Shown one piece after another: positions 2,098 to 63,918 of a stretch of 64,000 bases of DNA. The stretch is from Malacoraja senta (taxonomy: Eukaryota). The notes beneath the pieces are model-generated. The model saw nothing but the letters and a program-made list of their open reading frames with translations. It ran no database searches and was not told where the DNA came from. The stretch is from assembly GCA_038087875.1 (NCBI GenBank), contig JAXLNO010000674.1, forward strand, positions 62,001 through 126,000. The letters are read 5' to 3'. How positions within the stretch are numbered: position 1 is the stretch's first letter; each line of letters begins with the position of its first letter. The position numbers and the translations under genes were made by a program.

Positions 2098-3058
2098 TGA
2101 AGAAGATGCTTCCAAGTCATCTAGTTCCACACGATACACTTGAATTTTACCTTGAGAATTTCATTAATCGTGACGGGTGACTGATCCTCAGACCTCAGCA
2201 CCATCTGCTGGATCAGGCACTCCAAAGACAGGCTGAGAACCCTTTCTTCTTCTTCACCCAGACTCCAGTCAGGAGCCTTGTATATCAGCACGCCCAGAGA
2301 CACAATGACCTGAAATAAGCCAGTACCAATTAAATATTTAGCAGCTAAATACAGCTGGCATAACCATTAAGGACCTTTCCCTTTTAAAACAGAGGGCAAT
2401 GGAGAAAGATCAGTGCACACTCTAGAACGAGCAAGCAGGTAAAGCACAGACATCCAGATGGTGAAACTGGTCCATGAAATCATGCCATTTACGCATGAGT
2501 AATTACGTTACGGGAGCACCCACTGGAACACAGTAACGGTGAAAATCAGGAACATCAAGAAAATACTCAGAGGCTTCTACAAAAAACACCCTTCAATGTG
2601 CAATGAAGATGGCCCACTGGACATTACCGTTGACATCAGCTGTGGAAAAAAAATGTTTGCTGAATAAAGACTGCATATTCTATGAAGAATTACTGCCTTT
2701 GCATGTTTTTAAAATCAACATTAGCTGAGAATCGCGGAGAGAGTAAATGTATTTACTGAGCCCTCGGAATACAATTCATGGGATAAAGAGGATTAGAGAA
2801 TGTCCTAAGATTAATAGCTAATAGATCAACATCAACGAGATGGTTCAAGAGCTATTTGCAGGCTTAGTATTGCAGCATGTGCTGTGGATTCACTACATAG
2901 CAGAAGATTCCTCTGCCTGGTTTGGACAAAGATAGCACCAAGGAAAGGAGGGGCATGAGAGACAAGTTAGCAATACACCCAGGGCCGGCCTTAGGAGGTG
3001 CGGGGCCCAATTGGGAACAACTTTGTTGAGCCCCAGGTTCCCAGCCAAGGTCTGTCAG

Positions 3059-4031
3059 CAGGGCTCTCGCTTAACTTTTTTTCCCTGTTGCCAGGCGGGC
3101 AACCTAGGCAGTTTTTTAGGTTGCCAAATGACAGTTTAGGTGGTCATTTAGGATGGCTCGCATGACACGTGCGATAATGTGCTCGGACGAAGTGCGTAGT
3201 TACCAGTCAGAATTATGGTCAATGAAGCATTCACATATTATTTCTGCTTCAAATAAAGTCACAAACTAAACATATTCACCAATCAAGACATGATATATAC
3301 CACAATGACATGCAGCCACATTACAATACAGTATCTCATCTCTTTTTACACGTTGCAATGAATGCAATTTCGATTATTTCTTTCCACTTCCAAACAAAAT
3401 TCTGGTTGGATTATTCACCGTATGATCAACCCCAGTGAGACAAGTGCAGGCTTGGCGATCGCTTCCCACAATACCTACACTCAGTTCGCAATAACCAAAC
3501 TGATGGTGGCTGAGCACTTCAACTCCCCCTCCCATTCTGAATCCGACCTTTCTGTCCTGGGCCTCCTCCACGGCCAGAGTGAGGCCCACCGCAAATTGGA
3601 GGAGCAGCACCTCATATTTCGCTTGGGTAGTTTACACCCCAGCAGTATGAACATTGGCTTCTCCAATTTAAAGTAGTCCTTCTTTCTCCCTCCTTCCCCT
3701 CCCATTCCCAGCTCTCCCACAGCCTACTGTCTCCGCCTCTTCCTTTCTTTTTCTCGACCCCCCCCCCACTTGCCGACATCAGTCTGAAGAAGGGACTCAA
3801 CCGGAAACGTCGCCTATTCCTTCTCACCATAGATGCTGCCTCACCTGCTGATTTTCTCCAGCTTTGTCTACCAACGGGATCCCACCACTGGCCACAACTT
3901 CCCATCTCCTCCCCTGTCGGCTTTCTGCAGAGACCGCTCCCTCCGTAACTCCCTGGTCATTTCGTCCCTTCCCACCCAAACCACCCCCTCCCCGGGCACT
4001 TTCCCTTGCAACCGCAGGAAATGCTACACTT
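3059..4031 (+). mobile_element. Composite unit copy 1: hAT-like left end (3059-3430) plus two PLE fragments
   Basis: Colinear with 28042-29011 including both internal junctions; the PLE part encodes VAEHFNSPSHSESDLSVLGLLHGQ (ORF 3362-3676). Confidence 0.8.
3784..3811 (+). ncRNA. Minimal hammerhead ribozyme motif in PLE terminal repeat (stem II degenerate)
   Basis: CTGAAGA-A-GGGACTCAACCG-GAAA-C-GTC. Confidence 0.6.
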
Positions 4032-4032
4032 A

Positions 4033-4200
4033 CAGTGGCTTGCAAAAGTATTCATACCCCTTGAACTTTTCCACATTTTGTCACATTACAACCACAAACG
4101 TAAATGTATTTTATTGGGATTTTATGTGATAGACCAACACAAAGTGGCGCATAATTGTGAAGTGGAAGGAAAATGATACATGGTTTTCAAATTTTTTTAC
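4033..4200 (+). mobile_element. Tc1-family DNA transposon left end
   Basis: TA followed by CAGTGGCTTGCAAAAGTATTCATACCCCTTGAAC, a typical vertebrate Tc1 terminus; no right end seen. Confidence 0.75.
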
Positions 4201-4299
4201 CAGTCAGAAGCATGGAATAGTTGTCACCCTACTATAGGTACCCAACCAGAAGCAATTAAATTTAAGGTAGCTCTTTTTTACCCCCCAAGAACCCTTTTT

Positions 4300-4490
4300 T
4301 GTTTAAGTCCAAGTCAGGAGTCAAGAGTTTTATTGTCATGTGTCCCAGATAGGACAATGAAATTCTTGCTTGCTGCAGCACATCAGAATATGTAAACCTA
4401 ATACAGAACAGGAGATAAAAGTTCAGTGTGTCTATATACCATAGACCATATATATATACACACACAATAAATAAACAGATAAAATGCAAT
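4300..4490 (-). repeat. Rex1/Babar-like 3' tail remnant
   Basis: Reverse of ...gaatttcattgtcctatctgggacacatgacaataaaactcttgac, the same tail family as 49640-49690. Confidence 0.6.
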
Positions 4491-4599
4491 AGGCTATTTT
4501 TCAGTTTGGAGTTTGGTGGTGGTGTTTAAATTCTGTTTAAATTCCATTTCAAATATTTTTGGAGGACCAGAAAACCAAGAAGCAAGAGTTACTCCAGCT

Positions 4600-4960
4600 C
4601 CAGCGAGTGATTCTGCGTTGATTTTCAGCTAGCGGTCGCGTTGAGGCGGCGACCAGACAGCAATGGCAGCCAAATCTCCCACAATGCAAAGGAAGGGAGA
4701 AAGTGGCCAACGCTGACCAGTTGCAGTGGCAGTGCGCATGTGCAGGGTGGCACATGCGCATAACCACGGCCGATGATGCGCTGGCCAAAGATCCTCGCTA
4801 TAGGATGGTTGGTGCTGGCCGTGGTTGTCGGTTGTGCGCATGTGTAAGGCGGCCGGCCGTGCCGGTGGACGAGGAGTGGGCAGAAACCAGAGACATGGAC
4901 AGCAGGCGGAGTTGGAGAGAGAAAGATAGAGAGGGGGCCCGCTCAGAATTAAACGAGAGG
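4600..4960. promoter_or_regulatory. CpG-rich promoter-like segment with three NRF1-like motifs
   Basis: gtgcgcatgtgca (~4732), gcacatgcgca (~4750) and gtgcgcatgtg (~4834) in CpG-dense sequence not matching other repeats in the window. Confidence 0.4.
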
Positions 4961-5644
4961 TGTCCCTGGCGCTGTATCTCCAAACTAAACTGTATAACAT
5001 GCAGGTACATTCATTTAAAATACAATTCAGTGATTATTTCACATGATTTCTCACTGTATCTGACCAATCTCTGTTTAAGATGTTTGGTCTGCCTTCGGCA
5101 TTGACTCTGAACTAAAAACCTAAACCAGACTCAATTGTATAGTCACATTGGACTCAGTAAACTCACACATCTCTGCATTCAGGAGGCTGCCGTGGTTGGA
5201 ATTACCGGCTCCGAGACCTGAGTGGGTAAAGCGACCTGAGATCAATACATAAGATGATAGCTCTTCTCAATAAAAAAAACTGACGTTTTTCATTCTAACC
5301 ATGATGGCTAGAGCTTCTTGCAAGGTGATCTATGACCTCGCCAAGTAAATATTGTCGTAACGCTCAGTTGAGGTCAAATGAAGAAGATATTCATTTCATT
5401 GTTCAGTGGAGTCCATGGATGTGTCACTGAAAGCAATCTCCACACTACTTGTCCCCGTGTTGTAAGAAGTTACTTTTAAATTACTTGAAATAAAAGTTGA
5501 TTTCTCTTTGTCACAAATGTCAACCGTGCTTCTAATGAATGAGAAATCAATACACTTCTTTCTCTAACCTTCCGTAATTCAGTTGACTTTCATTTAAAGT
5601 GGAAGATGCAAACATTGTCAGCTCCACCTGGACTTCACCCAGAG

Positions 5645-5975
5645 TGACTGGGGAGTCCAGAACAAGGGGCCACAGTTTAAGAATAAGGGGGTAGGCCATT
5701 TAGGACTCAGATGAGGAAACACCCTTTCACCCAGAGAGTTGTGAATCTGTGCAATTCTCTGTCACAGAAGGCAGTGGTGGCCAATTCACTGGATGTTTTC
5801 AAGAGAGAGTTAGATTTAGCTCTTAGGGCTAACGGAATCAAGGGATATGGGGAGAAAGCAGGAACGAGGATATTGATTTTAGATGATCAGCCATGATCAT
5901 ATTGAATGGCAGTGCTGGCTCGAAGGGCCGAATGGCCTACTCCTGCACCTATTTTCTATGTTTCTGTTTCTATGA
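5645..5975 (+). mobile_element. CR1 (HER1-like) LINE 3' fragment
   Basis: ORF 5711-5896 FTQRVVNLCNSL...FKRELDLAL; 3' end gggccgaatggcctactcctgcacct followed by a tttctatg tail. Confidence 0.9.
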
Positions 5976-6075
5976 CTGATAGAAATGAAGGTATCTCGTG
6001 TGGGATTTGAAATCCCCATCAAGTCATAATGTACCAATAAAGATGCTCTGCTTTCTTTCCATAAATTATCTGCTC

Positions 6076-6376
6076 TAGTTTAGTTTAGTGATATAGCACG
6101 GAAATAGGCCCTTCGGCCCACCGTGTCCGCACCGACCAGCAATCCCCGCACACAATCACTATGCCACACACACTAGTGACAATTACATTTGTACCAAACC
6201 ACTTAACCTACAACCTGTACGTCTTTGGAGAGCGGGTGGAAACGGAAGATCTCGGAGAAAACCAATGCAGGTCGCGGGGAGAACGTATAAACTCCGTACA
6301 TACAGCACCGGTCATCAGGAAAGAACCCGGGTCTCTGGTGCTGTGAGGCAGCCACTGTACCGCTGCGCCACCGTGT
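6076..6376 (-). mobile_element. HE1-like V-SINE
   Basis: tRNA-like head, V-domain, CR1-type tail ending in (ctaaa)n on the minus strand. Confidence 0.85.
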
Positions 6377-6689
6377 CGCGAAGGTTTCTCGTGCGAGATT
6401 TGAAAGCCCCGTCAAGTCATAATGAACCAACAAAGATGCTCTATTTTCTTTCCATAAATTATCTATTTAGTTTAGTTGAGAGATACAGCGTGGAAACAGG
6501 CCCTTCTGCCCACCGAGTCTGCACCGACCCCCACACGCGAACACTATCCTGCACACAGTTCTTCAGGCTGAGAGCCAGGGGACAGGGAAACTAGAGGTAT
6601 GAAAAGATACAGACCAAACCCCAGAACAGAATCTGTTCTGTACCTTTTCTCACCTCTCGTTTTCCTAATAATATGGAAACCTTTGAACT

Positions 6690-6795
6690 ATTGAAACGAA
6701 GATAGCCACAAAATGCTGGAGCAACTCGGTGGGACAGGCAGCATCTCTGGATACAAGGAATGGGTGACGTTTTGGGTTGAGGCCCTTCTTCAGAC
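6690..6795 (-). mobile_element. PLE terminal-repeat remnant with mutated hammerhead (6766-6793)
   Basis: Minus strand CTGAAGA-A-GGGCCTCAACCC-AAAA-C-GTC (G12 changed to A). Confidence 0.75.
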
Positions 6796-6939
6796 CCTTC
6801 AACCATTGAACCAGCTCATTGGAGGTCTGTGAAACAGTGCAGAGCAATGCACCTTCTAGTTTTGTCCAGCACATTGGGGAAGTGAGTTATGCTTTACTCT
6901 AAAACCTTGGTAACAAAAGTAAATGACCCCCCGCACCCC

Positions 6940-7092
6940 CCACCCCACCCAACCCAACAGAAAGGAATCGCAGATGCAGCCGTCACCGCAAAAAGTCAAT
7001 GATTCCTGGAATGCCGAGGCGACAGGGTGAGAGAGAGGGAGTGAGAGAGCGTGAGAATGAGAGAGAGACGAAATGGGAGCGGGGAGACTGAT

Positions 7093-7124
<32 letters not shown>

Positions 7125-7165
7125 GGAGGGACGGAAAGAGCGAAAGACAGAGAAACACAATGTTT
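6940..7165 (-). repeat. Unclassified dispersed repeat X with (GA)n tract
   Basis: Reverse complement matches 16700-16855 joined to 25045-25110 (cggcattcc..gaatcattgac.ttttgcggtga.ggctgcatctgcg.ttcctttctgttggg). Confidence 0.6.
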
Positions 7166-7263
7166 TAAAGAAGGAACTGCAGATGCTGGAAAATCGAAGG
7201 TACACAAAAATGCTGGAGAAACTCAGCGGGTGCGGCAGCATCTATGGAGCGAAGGAAATAGGC

Positions 7264-7291
7264 AACGTTTCGGGCTGAAACCCTTCTTCAG
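7264..7291 (-). ncRNA. Minimal hammerhead ribozyme motif, core intact
   Basis: Minus strand CTGAAGA-A-GGGT-TTCA-GCCC-GAAA-C-GTT; stem II has one U-G pair; NUH triplet GUU. Confidence 0.7.
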
Positions 7292-8177
7292 ACTGATAGG
7301 GGGTGGGGAGAAGAAAGGAAAAAAGGCGGAGGAGGAGCCCGAGGGCTGGGAGGAGACAACCAGAGGGCTGATGAAGGGGAGGGGACAGCAAGGGCTAACA
7401 GAGTTTGGAGAATTCAATGTTCATGCCCCCAGAATGTAGACTGCCCAGGCGGAATATGAGGTGCATTTCCTCCAATTTCCGGTGTTGCTCGCTGTGGCCA
7501 TGGAGGAGACCCAGGACAGAGAGGTCAGATACGGAATGGGAGGGGGAGTTGAAGTGCTGAGCCACCGGGAGGTCAGGTAGGTTATTGCGGACCGACCGGA
7601 GGTGTTCGGCAAAACGATCGCCAAGCCTCCGCTTGGTCTCACCGATGTAGATCAGCTGACATCTAGAGCAGCGGATCTAATAGATGAGGTTGGAGGAGAT
7701 GCAGGTGAACCTCTGTCGCACCTGGAACGACTGCTTGGGTCCTTGAATGGAATCGAGGGGGGAGGTGAAGGGACAAGTGTTGCATCTCTTGCGGTTGCAA
7801 GGGAAAGTACCCGGGGAGGGGGTGGTACGGGAGGGAAGGGAAGAATTGTCAAGGGAGTTACGGAGGGAGCGGTCTTTGCGGAAGGCAGATATGGGGGAGA
7901 TGGGAAGATGTGGCGAGTGGTGGGGTCACGTTGGAGGTGGCGAAACTGACGGAGGATCACTTGTTGTATGTGACGGCTGGTGGGATGAAAGGTGAGGACT
8001 AGGCGGACTCTGCCCTTGTTGTGAGTGGGGGGGGTGGGGAGAGAGAGCAGTGTTGCGGGGTATGGCAGAGACCCTGGTGCGAGCCTCATCTATGGTGGAG
8101 GAGGGGAACCCCCGTTCCCTGAAGAATGAGGACATTTCGGATGCCCTGGTGTGGAACGCCTCATCCTGGGAGCAGAT

Positions 8178-9010
8178 GCGGCGTAGATTAGATTTTATTC
8201 TTGTCATTTGAACCTCAAAGAGGCTCAAACGAATCTCCATTTCCACAGCCATACAACAAAACAATTCCTACACGACACACAAACAATTCAATTTACAGAA
8301 AAAACATCCATCACAGTGAACCTCCTCCTCACTGTGATGGAAGGCAAAGTCTTTTCTCTCCCCTGCACCATTTTTCTCCCGACGTTGAAGCCCCAGGCGG
8401 GCAATGTTAAGTCCCACGGCCGTAGAGGCCGCGCCGGGCGGTGTACTGCCTCGCTCCGGGCCCAAAAGTCACAAAGTTGGAGCCCCCGGCGGGCGCTGGA
8501 ATGCCCCGCGGCCATTAAAGCCGCGCCGGGCGATTTACGGCCCCGCTCCGGGTCGTTCCAACCCCGCGACACGGGCGGGAGAAGTTGCGTTGCGGGAGCT
8601 CCGGAAAGCGGTCTCTCACGCTGACCCGCGAGCTCCCGATATCACTGTCCGCAGCTTGAGGTCCGGAGTCGGGCCGCAGCAGCGAGCCACCACCGCTCCT
8701 CACACTCCGAGGCCGGCCAGCCCCACGGTGGTAAGTCCGCAGCTCCGCAGGCTCCGCGACTGGAGCCCACAGGTCGTCCCGGTCGGAGGCCGCTCCACGG
8801 AGCTAGGCACCAAGGACAACAGAGACCCGACAGGGAAAAAGTCGGGTCTCCCGTACAGGGAAGAGATTTTTTTAAGTTTCCCCCGCCCCGCTCCCCCACA
8901 TATACACAGTTAAAAACAGTATAAAAAAACACAAACAACATTTAATGAGACAAAAATAAAAAAAGACAAACGGACTGCAGTCGAGCCGCTGCCGTTAGGC
9001 GCCGCCACAC
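8178..9010 (-). mobile_element. GC-rich non-coding retroposon or LINE 3' UTR inserted into the PLE
   Basis: Splits the PLE at gcgtaga|cggagg; (tctaa)n-type tail; shares the ccttccatcacagtgagg block with 37237-37870. Confidence 0.6.
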
Positions 9011-10699
9011 CCACGGAGGAATTGAGAGTGGGGGATGGAGTCCTTACAGGAAGCAGGGTGGGAAGAAGTGTAGTCCAGATAGCCATGGGAGTCAGTAGGT
9101 TTGTAGTGGATGTCGGTCAGACGTCTATCACCTGCGATGGAGATAGTGAGGTCAAGGAATGGTAGGGAAGTGTCGGAAATGGTCCAGGTGTATTTGAGTG
9201 CCGGATGGAAGTTGGTGGTGAAGCGGATGAAGTCAGTCAGTTGTATGTGGGTGCAGGAGGTGGCACCAAAACAGTCATCGATGTAGCGGAGGTAGAGGTC
9301 GGGGATGGGGCCCTGGTACGTACTGAACAAGGATTGTTCTACGTACCCGACAAAGAGGCAGGCGTAGCTGGGGCCTATGCGTGTGCCCATAGCTACGCCT
9401 TGTATTTGGAGGAAATGGGAGTAGTCAAATGAGAAATTATTGAGGGTAAGGACCAGCTCCGCTAGGCGGAGGAGGGCGTCAGTGGCCGGGTATAGGTTGC
9501 TTCTTCGGTCGAGGAAAAACCGGAGGGCTTCGAGACCATCCTGGTGGGGGATGGAGGTGTACAATGACTGGACGTCCATGGCGAAGATGAGGGGGAGAGG
9601 GCCTAGAGAGTGAAATGCGCGCAGACGACGGAGAGTGTCTGAGGTGTCTTGAACATAGGTAGGGAGGGATTTAACCAAGGGGGATAGGATGGAGTCGAGG
9701 TAGGCGGAGATGAGTTTGGTGGGGCACGAACAGGCAGAGACAATGGGTCTACCGGGACAGTCAGGTTTGTGGATTTTGGTAAAATCGGGCCGTGCGGGGC
9801 TGGGAAACGATGAGGTTGGTGGCTCGGTCGGGCAGGGCGTGGGAGTGCATGAAGTCGGTGATGGTGCTGGAGATGGTGGCCTGGTGCTCGTCAGTGGGGT
9901 CATGGTCCAGGAGTAAGTAGGAGGTGTCCGAGAGTTGGCGCGTGGCCTCAACTTTATAGAGATCGACGCGCGAGACTACCACGGCACCTCCCTTGTCGGC
10001 GGGTTTGATAACCCAATCTGGGTTGTTGCGGAGTGAGTCGATGGCAGTGCGTTCAGGAGGGGAGAGATTGGAGTGGGACAGGGGAGTGGAGAAGTTGAGG
10101 CGGTTGATGTCACGGCGGCAGTTTTTGATGAAGAATTCTAAAGCCGGAAAGCTACGAGGGGGGTTCCACGAGGAGAGGGTGCGTTGGAGACGGGAAAAGG
10201 GGTCATCGGTGGGGGGCGTGGTCTCCTTCCCATGGAAGTGCGCTGTGAGGCGGAGGCGACGGTAGAAGCGTTCCAAGTCATGGAGGGTGCGGAACTCATT
10301 GAGGTGGGGACGGAGGGGGACAAAGGTAAGACCTCTGCTGAGGACAGACCGTTCGATGTCGGAGAGGGGGAGGTGGGGGGGATGGTGAACACCCGGCAGG
10401 GATGGGGGTCGGGGCCGGAGGAAGGCAGGTGGGTGTAATGGGGACAGGGTGATGTGTGGTGGGGGGGTCGTGGGTGGTCAGGGGGTGGGGGGTGAGAGGG
10501 CTGTAGTGTGGGTGGGGAAGAGAAGGGGTCCCATAGTTGGAGAGGGATGGGGAAGCATCAGTGGAACTGCCACTGAGGTAACCAGGATTAGGCAGACTAG
10601 CGCTAGGACCCAGTGGAGTCAAACCCAGGAGAGCGGGAGTGAGCAGCGTGGAGGCTTCAGGCCCAGTACAGAGACCAGTTTGCAGGTGAGGTGACGGCT

Positions 10700-11250
10700 G
10701 CGGGCTGCTGGAGAGAGATGCAGTGGCGATGGTCGGCGGACCCGACGGTAGGAGTCCTCGGGCAGTCGAGTCGGGGTCGGCGGGGCAAGAGGGCGGTGTG
10801 GTGGCGAGGGCCGGCGGACCCGATAGTGGGAGTCCGTGGGCAGTAGAGTCGGGGTCGTGGGTCGGCGGGGCTGGAGGGCGTTGTGGTGGTGAGGGCCGGC
10901 GGACCCGATGGTCGGGGTCCTCGGGCCGTGGAGTCGGTGGGGCTGGAGGGCGTTGCAGTGGCGAGGGTCGGCGGACCCGATGGTCGGGGTCCGTGGGCAG
11001 TAGAGTCGGGGTCCGCGGGCGGTGCGTGGGAGGTCCCGGTGGGCGGATGGTCGGTGGGGCGGCGCGGTTCGACCAGCCCGGTGAGGCGACGAGGTGAGTA
11101 GGGTGCGGTGCGGCGGCCATGTTCGGGGAGCCCCGGTCCGGCGGCGATGTTCAATAGGCCCGGTGCGACGGCGATATTAGGCGGGCCCGGTCCGGCGGCG
11201 ATGTCGGTTGGGCCCGGTGCGGCGAGGTTCGGAGGAATCGGCGAGGGGGA
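10700..11250 (-). repeat. GC-rich tandem repeats encoding Pro/Thr-rich sequence in the PLE 5' region
   Basis: Recurrent gggccggcggacccgatggtcggggtcc..gggc..tagagtcgg units of about 60 bp and shorter gcccggtccggcggcgatgt units. Confidence 0.8.
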
Positions 11251-12913
11251 GGAAGTCCGAGTTACCGTATGAGCGGCGAGGCTGGGCGTCATCGGTGGGC
11301 AGGTGAAGGTCGGCGGCAGCATCGACGTGGAGGTCGGTGAAGGCGGCGTCTTGGAGAGTACTGGAGGTACAACGTGGGTCGGTAGGTGAATGACTAACCT
11401 GCACACCAAGAAGAAGCTCGCGGTCTGAGCCCTCAACCATGATGATGCGTTTAAAGAAATTCTCAATGTCGTCAATGCATCGATCTACATTCCTCAGTGT
11501 AATTGTGTTTTGACCAAGTATTAATGACGTCGCGTTCCTTTGAATAAAATTCACAGGGCGTCATTGGTCAAAACACAAGTACATTTACTGAGGAATGTGG
11601 ATCCTTTAATTGATGACACATTTTCTACCTCGAGCTACCTACGTGTTAACTACTGGCTGTTAACGTGCTGGTAGTTAACACATCGTTTTTGTCTGACGGC
11701 CGGTGCAGTGGTTTTTATCCATGTTCGTTTATAATTTAAAAAAATCCAAGGCAAATGTAAAAAAAAAAAAAATTGTATTTAGCAACACCAATTCGTATTT
11801 CCGTACGAAATACGGAAAATTAGCGCGGGGCCCCCCATTTCCGCGAAGCCCAATTGGGAGCAATCGGTCCAATCGGCTTAAGGCCGGCCCTGAATACACC
11901 ACTAGCTTAGAGCTCAAAACGACACAAATGTGGTACACCATAAGTGGAAGATACAGAAAAGCACAAAGGGAATTCCACACATTCCCCATCGCAACTCAGG
12001 GATCAGTTTCACATTTGGCCAAACCAGCAGCCACCCAAACTATGCTACAGAATTAGCACCCCAAATGTCACAGGTTTGTAGGTTAATTGGATGTGTGTGT
12101 GTGTGTGTGTGTGTTCTAATGGACGGGGATTTTGGTCGGTGCGGAATCGGTGCGCTGAAGGGCCTGTTTCTGCTCTATATCTCTAAACTGAACTAAAACA
12201 AAATCCGGATGGAACCCTGTGAGGCAGCAGCTCCAGCACCTGTGCCACTGTGCCAGCCTGTGTACTGCACATGAAGGCAGGAAGAATGTGATGCAAATCT
12301 TCTCCGTTAGGGCAGAAAATTCTCCCACTCTGCCTCCACAATTTAATTCATCCTCATGTTAAATTTGAGGCAAAGGCAAGAATTCTTTTAACTATTTCCA
12401 GTAAAGTGCTGCACAATCACAATATTGTGTACCATTATAGTCATTTCCTCATCTCCCCTGCCCCACAAACAAGCATTGAAGGGTGTGAGAAGCCTCAAGC
12501 AGGAGATTGTCACACAAGATAAAATATGAAGGAGATTCCCTGCTCCATTCAGAAATGTTTTCAGTCTCAGTGCAGCCAGCAAACCAGACTATCACGCTTG
12601 TGGATGTGATGGAAGGGGATTACTGAATGTGTACTGCTGCACAAATGGATGCATGCTACAGAGAACTAGAGATCTATATCCATCCATCTTGGCCTTTCCC
12701 TGCCACAGGGCTTCACGTCTCCAGCCAATGAAGATCATGTCGCTAGTGTATGCGCAAAGCTCTCCCACATTAATAGAAATGACTTGAAGGCAACCAACAC
12801 GAGAATAACATTCCCCAGACCCAAAGGTGACAAGGACAGGACCAGCCCATCTGCCAGGTGCCCACAGCCCTTCACAAACCACCACTAAGGGACAGACTTT
12901 GGGGACAGTTGAG

Positions 12914-23477: not shown

Positions 23478-24856
23478 AAATGGCATGTTGGCCTTTATAA
23501 CAGGAGGAATCGAATATAGGAGCAAAGAGGTCCTTCTGGATAGCAGTAACAGGATGGATTTACGAAGGGGAAATCTTGCTTGACTAATCTTCTGGAATTT
23601 TTTGAGGATGTAACTAGGAAAATGGACAAGGGAGAGTCAATGGATGTAGTGCACCTGGACTTTCAGAAAGCATTTGATAAGGTCCCACATAGGAGATTAG
23701 TGGGCAAAATTAGGGCACATGGTATTGGGGTAAAGTGCTGACATGGATAGAAAATTGGTTGGCAGACAGGAAACAAAGAGTACGGATTAACAGGTCCCTT
23801 TCAGAATGGCAGGCTGTTACCAGTGGGGTACCGCAAGGCTCGGTGCTGGGACTGCAGCTATTTACAATATACATCAATGATTTTGATGAAGGGATTCAAA
23901 GTAACATTATCAAATTTGCAGATGACACAAAGCTGGGTGGCAGTGTGAACTGTGAGGAGGATGCTATGAGAATGCAGGGTGACTTGGACAGGTTGGGGGA
24001 GTGGGCAGATGCATGGCAGATGAAGTTTAATGCGGATAAATGTGATGTTATCCACTTTGGTATTAAAACCAGGAAGGCAGATTACTATCTAAATGGTGTC
24101 AAGTTTGGAAAAGGGGAAGTACAACGGGATCTGGGGGTCCTTGTTCATCAGTCTATGAAAGTAAGCATGCAGGTACAGCAGGCAGTGAAGAAAGCGAATG
24201 GCATGTTGGCCTTTATAACAAGAGGAGTCGAGTATAGGAGCAAAGAGGTCCTTCTGCAGTTGTACTGAGCCCTAGTGAGACCACACCTGGAGTATTGTGT
24301 GCAGTTTTGGTCCCCTAATTTGAGGAAGGACATTCTTGCTATTGAGGGAGTGCAGCGTAGGTTTACAAGGTTAATTCCCGGGATGGTGGGACTGTCATAT
24401 GCTGAGAGAATGGAGCAGCTTGGCTTGTAGACTCTTGAGTTTAGAAGGATGAGAGGGCATCTCATTGAAACATATAAGATTTGTTAAGGGGTTGGACACG
24501 CTACAGGCAGGAAACATGTTCCCGATGTTGGGGGAGTCCAGAACCAGGGGCCACAGTTTAAGAATAAGGAGTAAGTCATTTAGAACGGGGACAAGGAAAC
24601 ACTTTTTCTCACAGAGAGTGGTGAGTGTGGAATTCTCTGCCTCAGAGGGCGGTGGAGGCCGGTTCTCTGGATGCTTTCAAGAGAGAGCTGGATGTTTTCA
24701 AGATAGGGCTCTTAAAGATAGCTGAGTCAGGGGATATGGGGAGAAGGCAGGAATGGGGTATTGATTGTGGATGATCAGCCATGTTCACATTGAATGGCGG
24801 TGCTGGCTCGAAGGGCCATATGGCCTGCTCCTGAACCTATTGTTTATTGTCTATTG
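23478..24856 (+). mobile_element. CR1 (HER1-like) LINE, 5'-truncated
   Basis: LDFQKAFDKVPH region, SGVPQGSVLG, KFADDTKLG (ORF 23735-24268), typical 3' end. Confidence 0.95.
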
Positions 24857-25554
24857 AAACGTCCCGAGCTCCGACGTACCCGCTACGTTCATTCTACGTG
24901 TTTACCACGAGTTTTGATTTGTTTTTAAACTCGGGAGAGCTCTTGGGTGAACTCGCACAGTAGGACAGGGCTTCACATCCGCTGAGTTTCTCCAGCATTT
25001 TTGTCCATCTTCGAATTTCCAGCATCTACAGTTCCTTCTTAGACATTGTGCGGTGATGGCTGCATCTGCGGTTCCTTTCTGTTGGGGGGAGGGGGGGGGG
25101 TCGGAGAGTCCTGGCCCGTGGCGGCTCCTGATAAGTGATATGTTCCCTCTGCAGGTGCTGCCTTGCCCGCTGAGTTCCTCCAGCACTCTGTGTTTTTTGT
25201 TTGGCTCTGAAGTTGAAGGTGGACCCCCCTGTGTCTACCTTCAACTCCCTGTCTGGTGTGGCTCAGCGGGACGGGCAGGGGCTCTGGGGAGAGGGTTGCG
25301 GTTCTGGTTGAGATCCTTCTTTAGACAATCACAAGTACTCTCACCGACGAGAGTTCAGTTCAGTCTGAAGAAGGGTCTTCTCTCCAGAGTCGCTGCGCTG
25401 CCTGTCCTGCTGAGCTACTCCAGCTTTTGTCTATCTCCAATTTCAGAGTTAGAGAAAATTGCAGACTTGATTCTTAAAATCTCAAAATTTTGTAACGTTG
25501 CTGGAAAATGTACCCGCATCTTGGAGGCCGAAGGTTAGGTTATTAGCCAAGAAA

Positions 25555-25628
25555 GATAGACTTCGTTATCCCTCAGTACAGCAACATCAAGAACGATGTT
25601 GTTGTACTGAGGGATAGCCAAGTCTATC
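25555..25628. other. 74-nt near-perfect hairpin
   Basis: 34-bp arms 25555-25588 and 25595-25628, loop AAGAAC, one C-C mismatch and two G-T pairs. Confidence 0.85.
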
Positions 25629-25709
25629 CCTCATTGCTAGCAGCTGATGGGAAGCGGCTGTAAATTGGGAAGCGGCTGTAAAAGGACAGCGCTGCTGGGG
25701 GGGGGGAAG

Positions 25710-26193
25710 AGAGTTCATTTCACAGCGTGTGGGTAGTCTGTCCAGGGGTAAAGTTGCGGGGAGGGCAGGAGGTTTGAGAAGGAGGGGTCGGCCGGGGATC
25801 ATCCAGCTCAAGAGCGGGTCAGCGGGCGATGGGTAACAGGACAGCGGGCGGTGGAGCTTACTCCATATGTCAGTGCGAGTAACCTCAATTGATCCCTTGT
25901 TCGCGCTGACACAGGAGTAAGCTTCAACGCCCGCTGTGATGTTATCCATCACCCGCTGACCACTCCGCTCTATGATCTTTGCTCTTGAGCTGGTCCCCTC
26001 ACTGTTCAGACGGAGAGCACTGCCAGAGGTGAGCGGGCCTCCACGGCCACAATGCGGTGCCTCCGCGCCCGGAGCGCCGCAGTAGCGGTGAGTGAGTGTT
26101 ACTGGCATCAACCCGACCCGCTCCTTCTCAACGCTCCTTCCCTCCTCGCAACTTTACCCCTGGCTAGACCCCACACGCTGTGAAAGGAACTCT
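25710..26193. repeat. Long imperfect fold-back (nested inverted repeats)
   Basis: 25710-25795 pairs with 26113-26193; 25800-25880 pairs with 25898-25997; unpaired insert about 25998-26110. Confidence 0.85.
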
Positions 26194-26265
26194 CCCCCGA
26201 ATTGTCATGTTACTCACGGCCCGTGACTCATTTATAATTATTTATTTATATTTCTACGAAAAAAT

Positions 26266-26303
26266 TTCCCAATTGGGCCCCGCACCTCCTAAGGCCTGCC
26301 CTG
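26266..26303 (-). mobile_element. Solitary hAT terminus of the same family as 2980
   Basis: tcccaattgggccccgcacctcctaaggcctgccctg is the inverse of 2980-3016 with one mismatch. Confidence 0.75.
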
Positions 26304-26594
26304 CTTCTACCCATGGGCCATCGATGTAACGTGGCTGAGAGATGGTGAGGGGGTCCACGAGTCTGAATCCAGTGATCTGTTGCCCAATTGGGATGGGACT
26401 TACCAGCTGAAGAATACAATTCAACTGAGTAGAGAAGATGTGGCAAAATTCTCCTGTAACATCGAACATGCAACTCTGCTGCAGGGAGTCAATGTTCCAC
26501 AGGGTAAGTGGCAAGTCAATGAGTCTGATCACTTGAGACAATAAACCTCCTGGACTGAGATAACATCCTCAATACACTCTTAACTAAGCTGTGC

Positions 26595-27775: not shown

Positions 27776-28041
27776 CACCCCCACGACCAGAGGAAGATGG
27801 TCCACCAGATTGACACCGATTTGCAGCCGGGCATGGCCAATCAGATAAGGGGCTGGAAAGCTGGGCTTTATTTATTTATTTATTTATTGCCTGTGCTAGT
27901 TTTGAGTTATTGGCTTAAAACACTATTATTCTGAAATGGAGGGCAAGGAAAATTACTGAAGGGTTGTTTAGAGACTACAGTGCGTTGTGACAGCATATGT
28001 AAGAAAGGCCTAGGACAGTGTCAAAAATACTATACACCTTG

Positions 28042-29011
28042 CAGGGCTCTCACTTAATTATTTTTCTCTGTTGTCAGCCGGGCAACCTTGGCAACTTTTT
28101 AAGTTGCCAAATGACAGTTTAGGTGGTTATTTAAGACGGCTTGCATGACATGTGCGATAATGTGCTCGGACGAAGTGCGTAGTTACCAGTCGGAATTATG
28201 CTCAATGAAGCATTCACCTATTATTTCTGCTTCAAATAAAGCCTCAAACAAAACATATTCACCAATTAGGACATGATATATACCACAATGACATGCAGCA
28301 AAATTATAATACTCTTTTTACACGTTGCAATGAAAGCAATTTCTATTATTTCTTTCCACTTCCAAACAAAAATGTGGTTGGATTATTCAGCGTATGATCA
28401 ACCTTGGTGAGACCAAGCGCAGGCTTGGCGATTGCTTCGCACAACACCTCCACTCAGTTCGCAATAACCAACCTGATCTCCCGGTGACTCAACACTTCAA
28501 CTCCCCCTCCCATTACGAATCCGGCCTTTCTGTCCTGGGCCTCCTCCATGGCCAGAGTGAGGCCCACCGCATATTGGAGGGGCAGCACCTCATATTTGCT
28601 TGGGTAGTTTATACCCCAGCGCTATGCACATCGGCTTCTCTAATTTCAGGTAGTCCTTGCTTTCTCCCTCCTTCCCCTCCCATTCCCAGCTCTCCCACAG
28701 CCTACTGTCTCCGCCTCTTCCTTTCTTTTTCATGTCATCCCCCCCCCCGACATCAATCTGAAGAAGGGTCTCGACCCGAAACGTCGTCTATTCCTTCGCT
28801 CCACAGATGCTGCCTTACCCGCTGATTTTCTACAGCTTTTTTGTCCACCAATGGGATTCCACCACTGCCCACATCTTCCCATCTCCTCCCCTGTTGGCTT
28901 TCCGTAGAGACCGCTCCCTCCGTAACTCCCTGGTCAATTCGTCCCTTCCCACCCAAACCACCCCCTCTCCTTGCACTTTCCCTTGCAACTGCAGGAAATG
29001 CTACACTTGTC
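28042..29011 (+). mobile_element. Composite unit copy 2: hAT-like left end plus two PLE fragments
   Basis: Colinear with 3059-4031; ORF 28394-28825 GETKRRLGDCFAQHL...HFNSPSH. Confidence 0.8.
28758..28785 (+). ncRNA. Minimal hammerhead ribozyme motif, best copy in the window
   Basis: CTGAAGA-A-GGGT-CTCG-ACCC-GAAA-C-GTC; predicted cleavage after 28785. Confidence 0.8.
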
Positions 29012-49532: not shown

Positions 49533-49690
49533 CGAATATGATCTGTATATATGTGTATTTATGAGTATGTGTATATATACACCCAGATATTTTTATTTCT
49601 TGTTTCTTATATTGTTTACAGTGTACTATGTTTACATATTCTGTTGTGCTGCTGCAAGTAAGAATGTCATTGTTCTATCTAGGACATCTC
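49190..49690 (+). mobile_element. Rex1/Babar 3' fragment with (TG)n(TA)n tract
   Basis: gcaagcatcatcagagacccacaccaccctggccacac; tail ctgcaagtaagaatgtcattgttc. Confidence 0.75.
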
Positions 49691-52662: not shown

Positions 52663-53084
52663 CCGCTCCCAAGTATAGATATAGGGAAAGATACAGCAGG
52701 CTGAAAACCGTGACAACCAGATTCAAGAACAGCCTCTTCTCAGCAAACATCAGGCTCTTCAACACCACACAAAAATAACTTCAGCATCTATGATCATCTA
52801 CGGACCGTCTTTGAATGTAATATGAATTTAGTTTTTTGCACTATTATGATAGTCCAGTATTACAGTTATTAATTTATTGTTTTTTGGTTGTTTTATATAT
52901 ATCTCTGTGTTATTGCAGTTACATGCAGGTGAAGCTGCAGCAAGTCAGAATTTTGTTGTTCTATTGTTGGTACATATGACAATTAAACAACTCTTACCTC
53001 ACATTTGAATTTGGGTAAAGCTCACTCCATATTACCCCCATCATACACTCGGGAAAAGTACAAGGAACAAGTACATGTTTAAGA

Positions 53085-54112
53085 AAGAACTGCAGATGTT
53101 GGAAAAATCCAAGGTAGACAAAAATGCTGGAGAAACTCAGCGGTGAGGCAGCATCTATGGAGCAAAGGAATAGGTGACGTTTTGGGTCGAGACCCTTCTT
53201 CAGACTGATATGGGGGTGGGGGGCGGGAAGAAGAAAGGAAGAGGTGGAGATAGTAGGCTGTGGGAGAGGTTCGAAGGGGAGGGGAAGGACCGAGAAAGCA
53301 AGGACTACCTGAAAATGGAGGTCAATGTTCATACCCAAGCAAAAACTACCCAAGCAAATAATGATATGCTGCTCCTCCAATTTGCAGAGGGTCTTACACT
53401 GGCGTGGAGGAGACCCAGGACAGAAAGGTCGGATTATGAATGGGAGGGGGAGTTGAAGTGCTGAGCCACCGGGAGATCAGGTTGGTTAATGCGGACTAAG
53501 CGGAGGTGTTGGGCGAAGCGATCGCCAAGCCTGAGCTTGGTCTCACCGATGTAGAGCAGTTGACACCTAGAGCAGCGGATGCAATAGACGAGGTTGGAGG
53601 AGGGGCAGGTGAACCTCTGCCTCACCTGAAAAGACTGCTTAGGTCCTTGGATGGAGTCAAGGGGGGAGATAAAGCGACAAGTGTAGCATTTCCTGCTGTT
53701 GCAAGGGAAAGTGCCAGGGGAGGGGAAGGTTAGGGAATGGGGCTTCTTCTCTTCGACTATAGATCAGGCTCTCACCAGGGGGGTCTCTTCTATATCCCGT
53801 TGCTCTACTCTCACTCCCCATCCCCCCACTCATGACAAGTCCCCCTTGTCCTCACCTTCCACCCTACCAGCCGTCACATACAACAGATAATCCTCCGACA
53901 TATTCGCCACCTCCAATGGGATCCCATCACTGGCCACATCTTCTCATCTTCTCCCCTTTCAGCTTTCTGCAGAGACTGCTCCCTCTGTAACTCCCTGGTG
54001 AATTTGTCCCTTCCCACCCAAACCACCCCCTCCCCTGGTACTTTCCCTTGCAACCGCAGGAAATGCTACACTTGTCGCTTTACCTCCCCCCTTAACTCCG
54101 TCCAAGGACCTA
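53085..54112. mobile_element. PLE 3' fragment (minus, 53085-53730) joined to an inverted PLE segment (plus, about 53735-54112)
   Basis: ORF 53434-53625 QRFTCPSSNLVYCIRCSRCQLLYIGETK; 53620-53725 is the inverse of 54020-54112; hammerhead at 53176-53203 with G12 changed to A. Confidence 0.88.
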
Positions 54113-54244
54113 GGCATGCCATGCTATCCAAACAGATTGGATATACCATACACAGATATAATCAATTAAAAGGGGAATAATATCATGCAGAATAACGATC
54201 TCAGCATTGTAGCGCATCAGTTCCAGTGAGAAAGACCAATGATC

Positions 54245-62660: not shown

Positions 62661-63918
62661 AGAAACATAGAAATAGAAACATAGAAATTAGGTGCAGGAG
62701 TAGGCCATTCGGCCCTTCGAGCCTGCACCGCCATTCAATATGATCATGGCTGATCATCCAACTCAGTATACCGTACCTGCCTTCTCTCCATACCCTCTGA
62801 TCCCTTTAGCCACAAGGGCCACATCTAACTCCCTCTTAAATATAGCCAATGAACTGGCCTCAACTACCCTCTGTGGCAGAGAGTTCCAGAGATTCACCAC
62901 TCTCTGTGTGAAAAAAGTTCTTCTCATCTCGGTTTTAAAGGATTTCCCCCTTATCCTTAAGCTGTGACCCCTTGTCCTGGTCTTCCCCAACATCGGGAGC
63001 AATCTTCCTGCATCTAACCTGTCCAACCCCTTAAGAATTTTGTAAGTTTCTATAAGATCCCCTCTCAATCTCCTAAATTCTAGAGAGTATAAACCAAGTC
63101 TATCCAGTCTTTCTTCATAAGACAGTCCTGACATCCCAGGAATCAGTCTGGTGAACCTTCTCTGCACTCCCTCTATGGCAATAATGTCCTTCCTCAGATT
63201 TGGAGACCAAAACTGTACGCAATACTCCAGGTGTGGTCTCACCAAGACCCTGTACTACTGCAGTAGAACCTCCCTGCTCCTATACTCAAATCCTTTTGCT
63301 ATGAAAGCTAACATACCATTCGCTTTCTTCACTGCCTGCTGCACCTGCATGCCTACTTTCAATGACTGGTGTACCATGACACCCAGGTCTCGCTGCATCT
63401 CCCCTTTTCCTAGTCGGCCACCATTTAGATAATAGTCTGCTTTCCTGTTTTTGCCACCAAAATGGATAACCTCACATTTATCCACATTATACTGCATCTG
63501 CCAAACATTTGCCCACTCACCCAGCCTATCCAAGTCACCTTGCAGTCTCCTAGCATCCTCCTCACAGCTAACACTGCCCCCCAGCTTAGTGTCATCCGCA
63601 AACTTGGAGATATTGCCTTCAATTCCGTCATCCAGTTCATTAATATATATTGTAAATAGCTGGGGTCCCAGCACTGAGCCTTGCGGTACCCCACTAGTCA
63701 CTGCCTGCCATTGTGAAAAGGACCCGTTTACTCCTACTCTTTGCTTCCTGTTTGCCAGCCAGTTCTCTATCCACATCAATACTGAACCCCCAATGCCATG
63801 TGCTTTAAGTTTGTATACTAATCTCTTATGTGGGACCTTGTCGAAAGCCTTCTGGAAGTCCAGATACACATCCACTGGTTCTCCCCTATCCACGCTACTA
63901 GTTGTCCACGCTACTATC
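62661..63918 (-). mobile_element. Young 5'-truncated CR1 (HER1-like) LINE
   Basis: ORF 63255-63893 YLDFQKAFDKVPH, SGVPQGSVLGPQLF, KFADDTKLG; ORF 62763-63245; (tttctatg)n-type tail at 62661-62690. Confidence 0.96.

Follow-up and report, generated by a model that had tools for sequence, protein, structure and literature searches.

How did an 8.9-kb segment bounded by the ends of a hAT transposon come to lie in the genome of a skate, and where was its interior put together? The segment is located in Malacoraja senta (assembly GCA_038087875.1, contig JAXLNO010000674.1, positions 62,001 to 126,000 of the forward strand), in a stretch of 64,000 nucleotides that was analysed as a whole and is referred to here as the window. 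The original prediction, made from the letters of the window, had read it as a possible Pack-type hAT element that captured and moved about 8.8 kb of chromosome. Our analysis identifies positions 2980-11892 as a single, non-autonomous hAT-type insertion, with an 8-bp target site duplication (TSD), short terminal inverted repeats (TIRs) and the YARNG tip of hAT elements. The insertion is lineage-specific: the window species and its closest sampled relative have it, and three skates that are more distant lack it at the site. Every testable part of its interior is composed of other repeats, with no unique or genic DNA captured from the chromosome. The reading we favour, with a probability of about 0.5, is a long composite non-autonomous hAT element with a mosaic body that was assembled elsewhere and carried in, not a one-off capture of the Pack type.

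Termini and target site duplication

The two ends of the element possess a perfect 14-bp TIR, CAGGGCCGGCCTTA at 2980-2993, which recurs as an exact reverse complement at 11879-11892, and are directly flanked by a perfect 8-bp TSD, AATACACC, at 2972-2979 and 11893-11900. The left boundary (2972-2995) reads gcAATACACC/CAGGGCCGGCCTTAGG and the right boundary (11877-11902) reads CTTAAGGCCGGCCCTG/AATACACCac, the slash marking the limit of the element. Both TIR tips are CAGGG, with 14 of 14 bases complementary, and fit the tip 5'-YARNG that Rubin et al. reportedly described in 2001 for the short TIRs of hAT elements. The hAT target preference nTnnnnAn is a tendency, not a rule, and is not followed here, positions 2 and 7 of AATACACC being A and C, respectively.

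Owing to its many repeats, the window contains perfect 14-bp inverted-repeat pairs in large number, 783 of them no more than 20 kb apart. Only the 2980/11892 pair among these 783 has identical 8-mers directly outside, exactly where the original prediction had placed them, and the chance expectation of such a case over all 783 pairs is about 0.012. Composition-matched shuffles of the sequence gave zero cases of this kind at k=10. There are no N stretches in the window.

Within the window there are exactly two copies of the TIR 14-mer, inverted relative to each other, and a further one with one mismatch, at 26290-26303. The latter belongs to a third end of the same family, which we call hAT-A (26303-26266), and 37 of its 38 bases are as in the left end. 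All three ends carry the motif CCCAATTGGG 12-20 bp inside the TIR, and within the element this motif is located at 3006-3015 (left) and 11849-11858 (right). In addition, the terminus of about 38 bases, composed of the TIR and GGGGCCCAATTGGG, is present in two eukaryote-looking, non-coding sequences of the metagenome Ga0049107 (L001, 466-501; L002, 676-711), which apart from the terminus have nothing in common with the window; neither the other end nor a transposase was found in the available part of the two. The terminus is a conserved family end that is kept outside the M. senta genome too. The unique combination of TIRs and TSD and the recurring family terminus together indicate that the ends are real and mark one insertion event. 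The DNA to the left of the third end (25000-26303) matches the element only in the 38-bp terminus and in common Penelope-like tails, and the order is not shared. Perfect ends were also considered as a proof of youth, which was rejected, since by our own calculation (exp(-44d) = 0.05) the 44 unchanged paired bases bound the age only to less than about 7% divergence per site.

The original prediction had noted no recognizable transposase in the interior, which is borne out by the Pfam search. Zero family matches were obtained among 63 stop-free pieces of at least 40 amino acids (aa) in 2980-7170 and 11380-11892, and the sole enzyme signals in the element, RVT_1 and a weak GIY-YIG, both derive from a nested Penelope-like element (PLE). 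The element encodes no transposase. Members of the hAT superfamily are moved by a transposase that has a hAT dimerisation domain, and they have their termini in common with an autonomous relative.

The mosaic interior and its copy depth

Logan contigs from four runs of four organisms, all related skates (X1, X3, X4 and X5), were placed on 2500-8499 at a likeness of at least 90%. The flank at 2500-2899 is covered by one contig in each organism, with a word depth of about 80 in X1, 51 in X3, 29 in X4 and 23 in X5, and this depth was taken as the single-copy level. The parts of the element, including short (SINE) and long (LINE) interspersed nuclear element pieces, are listed below, with the strand where it was assigned.

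2972..2979: left copy of the TSD AATACACC
2980..3058, plus strand: hAT-A left end, with the TIR at 2980-2993, the conserved terminus to ~3017 and CCCAATTGGG at 3006-3015
3059..4031, plus strand: nested chimera B, a second hAT-like end (CAGGGCTCTCGCTTAA) with ~380 bp, joined to rearranged Penelope-like pieces
4032..4200, plus strand: Tc1-like stub of ~170 bp, read from the sequence as a left terminus only, cut off at 4200
4329..~4600: high-copy interspersed repeat, with loose contig ends at 4329 and window copies at 49622-49686 and 52934-52988
4600..4950: CpG-rich block with decayed NRF1-like palindromes, itself a repeat
4951..5650: low-copy backbone segment, at 15-45 times the flank depth in X1 and similar ratios in the three other organisms
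5651..5972, plus strand: 5'-truncated LINE 3' fragment with the 6-bp TSD TGACTG (5645-5650 and 5973-5978)
5979..6560, minus strand: tandem duplication of an 85-bp backbone piece and a tRNA-type SINE
6691..6797: short Penelope-tail-like repeat, with many window copies
6798..7163: backbone piece, then a GA-rich simple repeat; depth at 6843 ~46 times flank
7173..11449, minus strand: PLE of 4.3 kb, with RVT_1, a weak GIY-YIG and a TSD
8188..9013: 826-bp high-copy repeat inserted in the PLE, with a loose contig end at 8187
11459..11892, plus strand: hAT-A right end, with a subterminal region, a 150-bp hairpin (11467-11618), an A14 run (11760-11773), CCCAATTGGG at 11849-11858 and the TIR at 11879-11892
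11893..11900: right copy of the TSD AATACACC

The original prediction had described about 2 kb of the interior as non-repetitive, including 4500-5640, 5985-6075 and 6800-6940. These three segments are multi-copy in all four organisms. The summed depths of the contigs in X1 and their ratios to the flank are as follows.

5141: 1216, ~15 times flank
5203-5219: 3254-3592, ~41-45 times flank
5342: 1597, ~20 times flank
5591: 2461, ~31 times flank
6018: 3582, ~45 times flank
6843: 3677, ~46 times flank
4571 (tabled with the CpG block): 318,206, ~4000 times flank
4700-4899 (CpG block): 53,063, ~660 times flank
4932 (CpG block): 35,439, ~440 times flank
5023 (tabled with the CpG block): 5752, ~72 times flank

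At the backbone positions the depth ratios are similar in X3, X4 and X5, and every contig's letter differs from that of the window, a pattern which reads as that of a family consensus against the private changes of one copy. The depth of the backbone implies roughly tens of copies, although summed word depth is not itself a copy number. Within the part covered by the depths, 2500-8499, the region next to the left end reaches thousands of times the flank depth, against only 15-46 times for the backbone. Single-copy or double depth is found in none of the bins of 2980-8499, and a depth so far from one or two is unlike that of a moved or copied unique segment. As a lesson for annotation, a low-copy repeat can pass for unique sequence within 64 kb, and read depth in relatives settles the matter quickly.

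The promoter-like block with CpG and NRF1 features named in the original prediction does exist: 4700-4899 has a GC content of 0.61 and a CpG observed/expected ratio of 0.86, and contains decayed palindromes of the GCGCATGCGC type. It is, however, a high-copy repeat and not unique sequence. A 133-aa frame of the block has no match in a search of 5.8 billion proteins, and a 160-aa stop-free frame has none in a library of 1.84 billion representative proteins. No captured exon or gene-derived sequence was found with Pfam and the protein libraries, one frame of the block having been searched in the large libraries, and the element provides no evidence of gene or promoter capture. The region 4900-5099 differs in depth between the organisms, from about 115 times the single-copy level in X1 and about 500-620 in X4 and X5 to about 4100 in X3, which suggests a lineage-specific burst of one repeat.

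The SINE, LINE-tail, Tc1-end and Penelope-like pieces, which had been recognized from the sequence alone, are confirmed by other copies in the window and by loose contig ends. Chimera B has a second window copy at 28041-29008, 88.5% identical over 984 bp, and its left part reaches a word depth of about 10,000 times flank in the four organisms. Neither a right end of chimera B nor a second copy of its flanking 8-mer, TCTGTCAG, was found when sought. The Tc1-like element continues past 4200 in other copies, as seen from loose contig ends (agreement 0.98-0.99). Given the missing right end of chimera B and the 170-bp Tc1 stub, the interior is no orderly series of intact insertions nested in one another. 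Both copies of chimera B lie close to a hAT-A family end, at distances of 79 bp and 1.7 kb, and this proximity may be more than coincidence.

The LINE fragment has window copies at 24531-24847 and 62666-62987, with loose contig ends at 5650 and 5959-5965. The tandem duplication next to it is composed of unit 1 (5987-6379) and unit 2 (6380-6560), the latter cut short, with about 15% mismatches between them; the backbone piece 5987-6071 is thus repeated inside the element at 6380-6464. No SINE TSD was found at 5979-6560. Rfam gives two matches in 2900-12000, both below threshold, one at the hairpin (11465-11623) and one at the Tc1 stub.

The PLE makes up half of the length of the hAT element and represents a separate event. 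Its own TSD, perfect and up to 9 bp long, is TTTAAAGAA at 7164-7172 and 11450-11458. It probably entered late, after the arrival of the hAT element, and the backbone piece and GA-rich repeat at 6798-7163 were contiguous with 11459 onward before it landed. Its reading frame is broken at several places. Penelope-like elements carry a GIY-YIG endonuclease behind the reverse transcriptase, both on one strand. In Pfam, RVT_1 is found in 8998-9975 just above the cut-off (E 6e-07, 29.8 bits), and the weak GIY-YIG signal (E 0.012, below the cut-off) lies downstream of it on the same strand, in 7398-7676. The 5' part of the PLE has a CpG observed/expected ratio of 1.1-1.3. Other Penelope-like copies are located at 1-1252 and 53075-54116 of the window. 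The first of them matches 7363-8187 with its positions 20-819 and 9013-9447 with its positions 819-1252, and this continuity across the insertion point identifies 8188-9013 as a repeat that splits the PLE. The second is made of two Penelope-like pieces in head-to-head orientation (53075-53736 corresponds to 7160-7832, and 53732-54116 to 8120-7732 reversed), forming an inverted arrangement of one and the same part of the PLE.

Two observations concern the surroundings of the third hAT-A end. This end (region 26266-26538) abuts an immunoglobulin C1-set (MHC-like) exon (C1-set E 1.5e-10), which is cut at position 25 of 86 of the Pfam profile, exactly at the TIR tip; neither the first part of the exon nor a partner end with the TSD CTTCTACC was found in the window. 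Moreover, 25690-26200, just inside the third end, forms a large fold-back recognized by eye only, with arms of about 100 bases (~25700-25800 and ~26100-26200) that are reverse complements of each other.

The left junction in related skates

X1 is the closest relative, its flank being about 1.5% different from that of the window. A contig of single-copy depth spans 2667-2993 in this organism and crosses the TSD into the TIR, so the left junction is present in X1. The same contig stops precisely with the final base of the perfect TIR (2993/2994), before a 31-mer graph should break, and two forms that diverge immediately behind the TIR may be present in X1.

The flank contigs of X3, X4 and X5 (1063-1593 nt, single-copy depth) match the window from 2508, 2513 and 2533, respectively, to 2970 at about 92-93%, with 21-29 substitutions and 9-11 gaps over about 440-460 nt, which corresponds to about 5-6% substitutions. 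Past 2970 they continue for 634-637 nt that fit nothing in 2971-8499. As these contigs leave the window sequence at 2970, the three organisms are without the left end of the element at this site.

Parts of the interior are nevertheless found in the same organisms. The backbone/LINE junction at 5650 is bridged by low-copy contigs of X4 and X5 (5483-5687 and 5535-5689), and the junction between SINE head and backbone at 6379/6380 is bridged by a low-copy contig of X3 (6334-6441). Since both junctions are present in species without the element at the site, at least this 1-kb composite exists elsewhere in their genomes and was not built at this locus. In addition, the internal duplication, about 15% diverged, exceeds the substitutions of the flank (about 5-6%) roughly three times. 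To the original prediction the ends had looked younger than the contents, and for part of the contents these results, together with the absence of the insertion at the site in the three skates, support it.

Proposed origin of the element

Taken together, the internal junctions found elsewhere, the older duplication, and the absence of ends in chimera B and the Tc1 stub favour an arrival of the element with a ready-made mosaic body of up to 4.6 kb, part of which was most likely put together elsewhere. About 4.6 kb of older repeat pieces around the backbone would have been assembled earlier and elsewhere, and would have formed the body of the element on its arrival. Elements of this sort are known to move by cut-and-paste through a hAT transposase provided in trans, which here would have cut at the two termini and pasted the element into AATACACC, duplicating 8 bases. 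The long form itself may be a family of roughly tens of copies, older repeats having accumulated in its interior, or it may have come about through the joint use of the outer ends of two neighbouring short elements. The PLE would then have entered by separate reverse transcription. The data show the ends and their TSD, the lack of a transposase, the multi-copy interior, the TSDs of the PLE and the LINE fragment, and the state of the left junction in each species; we infer the travel of the mosaic between these ends, the origin of the long form and the timing of the PLE.

Several points weigh against this account. A second full-length copy was not seen, and the backbone may instead be an independent unit which at this locus inserted into a short hAT element. 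The estimate of tens of copies comes from summed word depth, with the limit given above. Remnants of inner TIRs, as from a fusion of two elements, were sought and none was found: in 2994-11878 there is no TIR match with at most two mismatches, one poor match with three mismatches (11177), and no further CCCAATTGGG. The contigs of the distant skates stop at 2970, nine bases short of the TIR, and the comparison covers the left flank only, where no clean empty site is read. Moreover, the comparison is unrooted, and a loss by excision or deletion in three skates is as parsimonious as a gain here.

A serious rival, possible but in our view at well below even odds, is that the element was filled in place. 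A hAT-A element of about 0.5 kb (2980-3058 plus 11459-11892) would have landed here and then been enlarged by separate insertions, namely chimera B, Tc1, the CpG repeat, a composite backbone unit and the PLE, with later deletions removing some of their ends; the three other skates would have lost the element by excision or deletion, or the filling would have been rapid. Filling in place agrees with the own TSDs of the PLE and the LINE fragment, with the fact that each tested interior segment is a repeat itself (15 to more than 10,000 times flank depth) and with the stop at 2970, which could be an excision footprint. It is difficult to reconcile with the junctions at 5650 and 6379/6380 in species that lack the element at the site, which place the making of at least this 1-kb composite elsewhere, and with a duplication about 15% diverged beside a flank at 5-6%. 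Chimera B, the Tc1 stub and the SINE units are also without TSDs or ends, and the 460 nt of orthologous flank in the three species contain small gaps only and no large insertion. The original prediction had itself named the finding that would count against capture, interior segments belonging to a repeat family and nested repeats each with its own TSD. This holds for the multi-copy segments, the PLE and the LINE fragment, but not for the chimera of hAT-like and Penelope-like parts, the Tc1 stub and the SINE duplication, which have no TSD.

The capture that had been proposed, a single move of some 8.8 kb of ordinary, single-copy chromosome with a host promoter in it, is very improbable. The interior does resemble ordinary repeat-rich intergenic DNA, and the published Pack-TYPE model mobilises DNA between two neighbouring insertions (PMC8903248). 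The model of a one-off capture is contradicted in 2980-8499 by the lack of any bin at single-copy or double depth, the CpG block lies at about 440-660 times flank depth, neither protein nor Pfam similarity was found, and half of the length is the 4.3-kb PLE with its own TSD. Least credible of all is that no single transposition took place, the two ends being unrelated solo ends that face each other by chance or through misassembly. The ends do come from a high-copy family with a third end in the window, but identical outer 8-mers are expected far too rarely over the 783 pairs (about 0.012 times), and the left junction is crossed by a contig of an independent run. An unlikely, more far-reaching variant is that a skate hAT transposase moved at least 4.6 kb, possibly 8.9 kb, of repeat-rich chromosome through the outer ends of neighbouring short elements within the last few percent of divergence, the inner ends having since been lost. 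If true, this would be a macrotransposition of ordinary chromosome in a vertebrate.

The composite element that we favour resembles other non-autonomous hAT elements, such as long internally unrelated derivatives and miniature inverted-repeat transposable elements, in its 8-bp TSD, short CAGGG TIR, conserved subterminal motif and lack of a transposase, and in having termini common to shorter or other copies while the interior differs. Unlike the usual non-autonomous hAT elements of animals, it is unusually long at 8.9 kb, and half of it is a probably later retroelement. Linked element ends of the Ac/Ds macrotransposons of maize, reportedly described by Huang and Dooner in 2008, are said to move many kilobases together and to create an 8-bp TSD. 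Those macrotransposons keep both inner ends, whereas no inner TIR or second CCCAATTGGG pair is found in 2994-11878.

Like the Pack-TYPE elements of plants (Pack-hAT, Pack-MULE and Pack-CACTA), the element is bounded by TIRs and TSD, non-autonomous, and unrelated to a transposase in its interior (PMC8903248). In Pack-TYPE transposons the interior is less repeated than the ends, and according to the Pack-TYPE model the outer TIRs of two neighbouring insertions mobilise the intervening DNA (PMC8903248), which would explain a repeat-mosaic body as found here. Unlike Pack-TYPE elements, which are defined by captured gene or exon sequence, this element shows no gene-derived sequence, and its interior is all multi-copy.

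What is new, on the reading that we favour, is a skate hAT element that is long, composite and non-autonomous and was inserted in one lineage; its kind is already known. Our analysis indicates that movement of this hAT family is recent enough for related skate species to differ, and that the family was able to carry a body of several kilobases.

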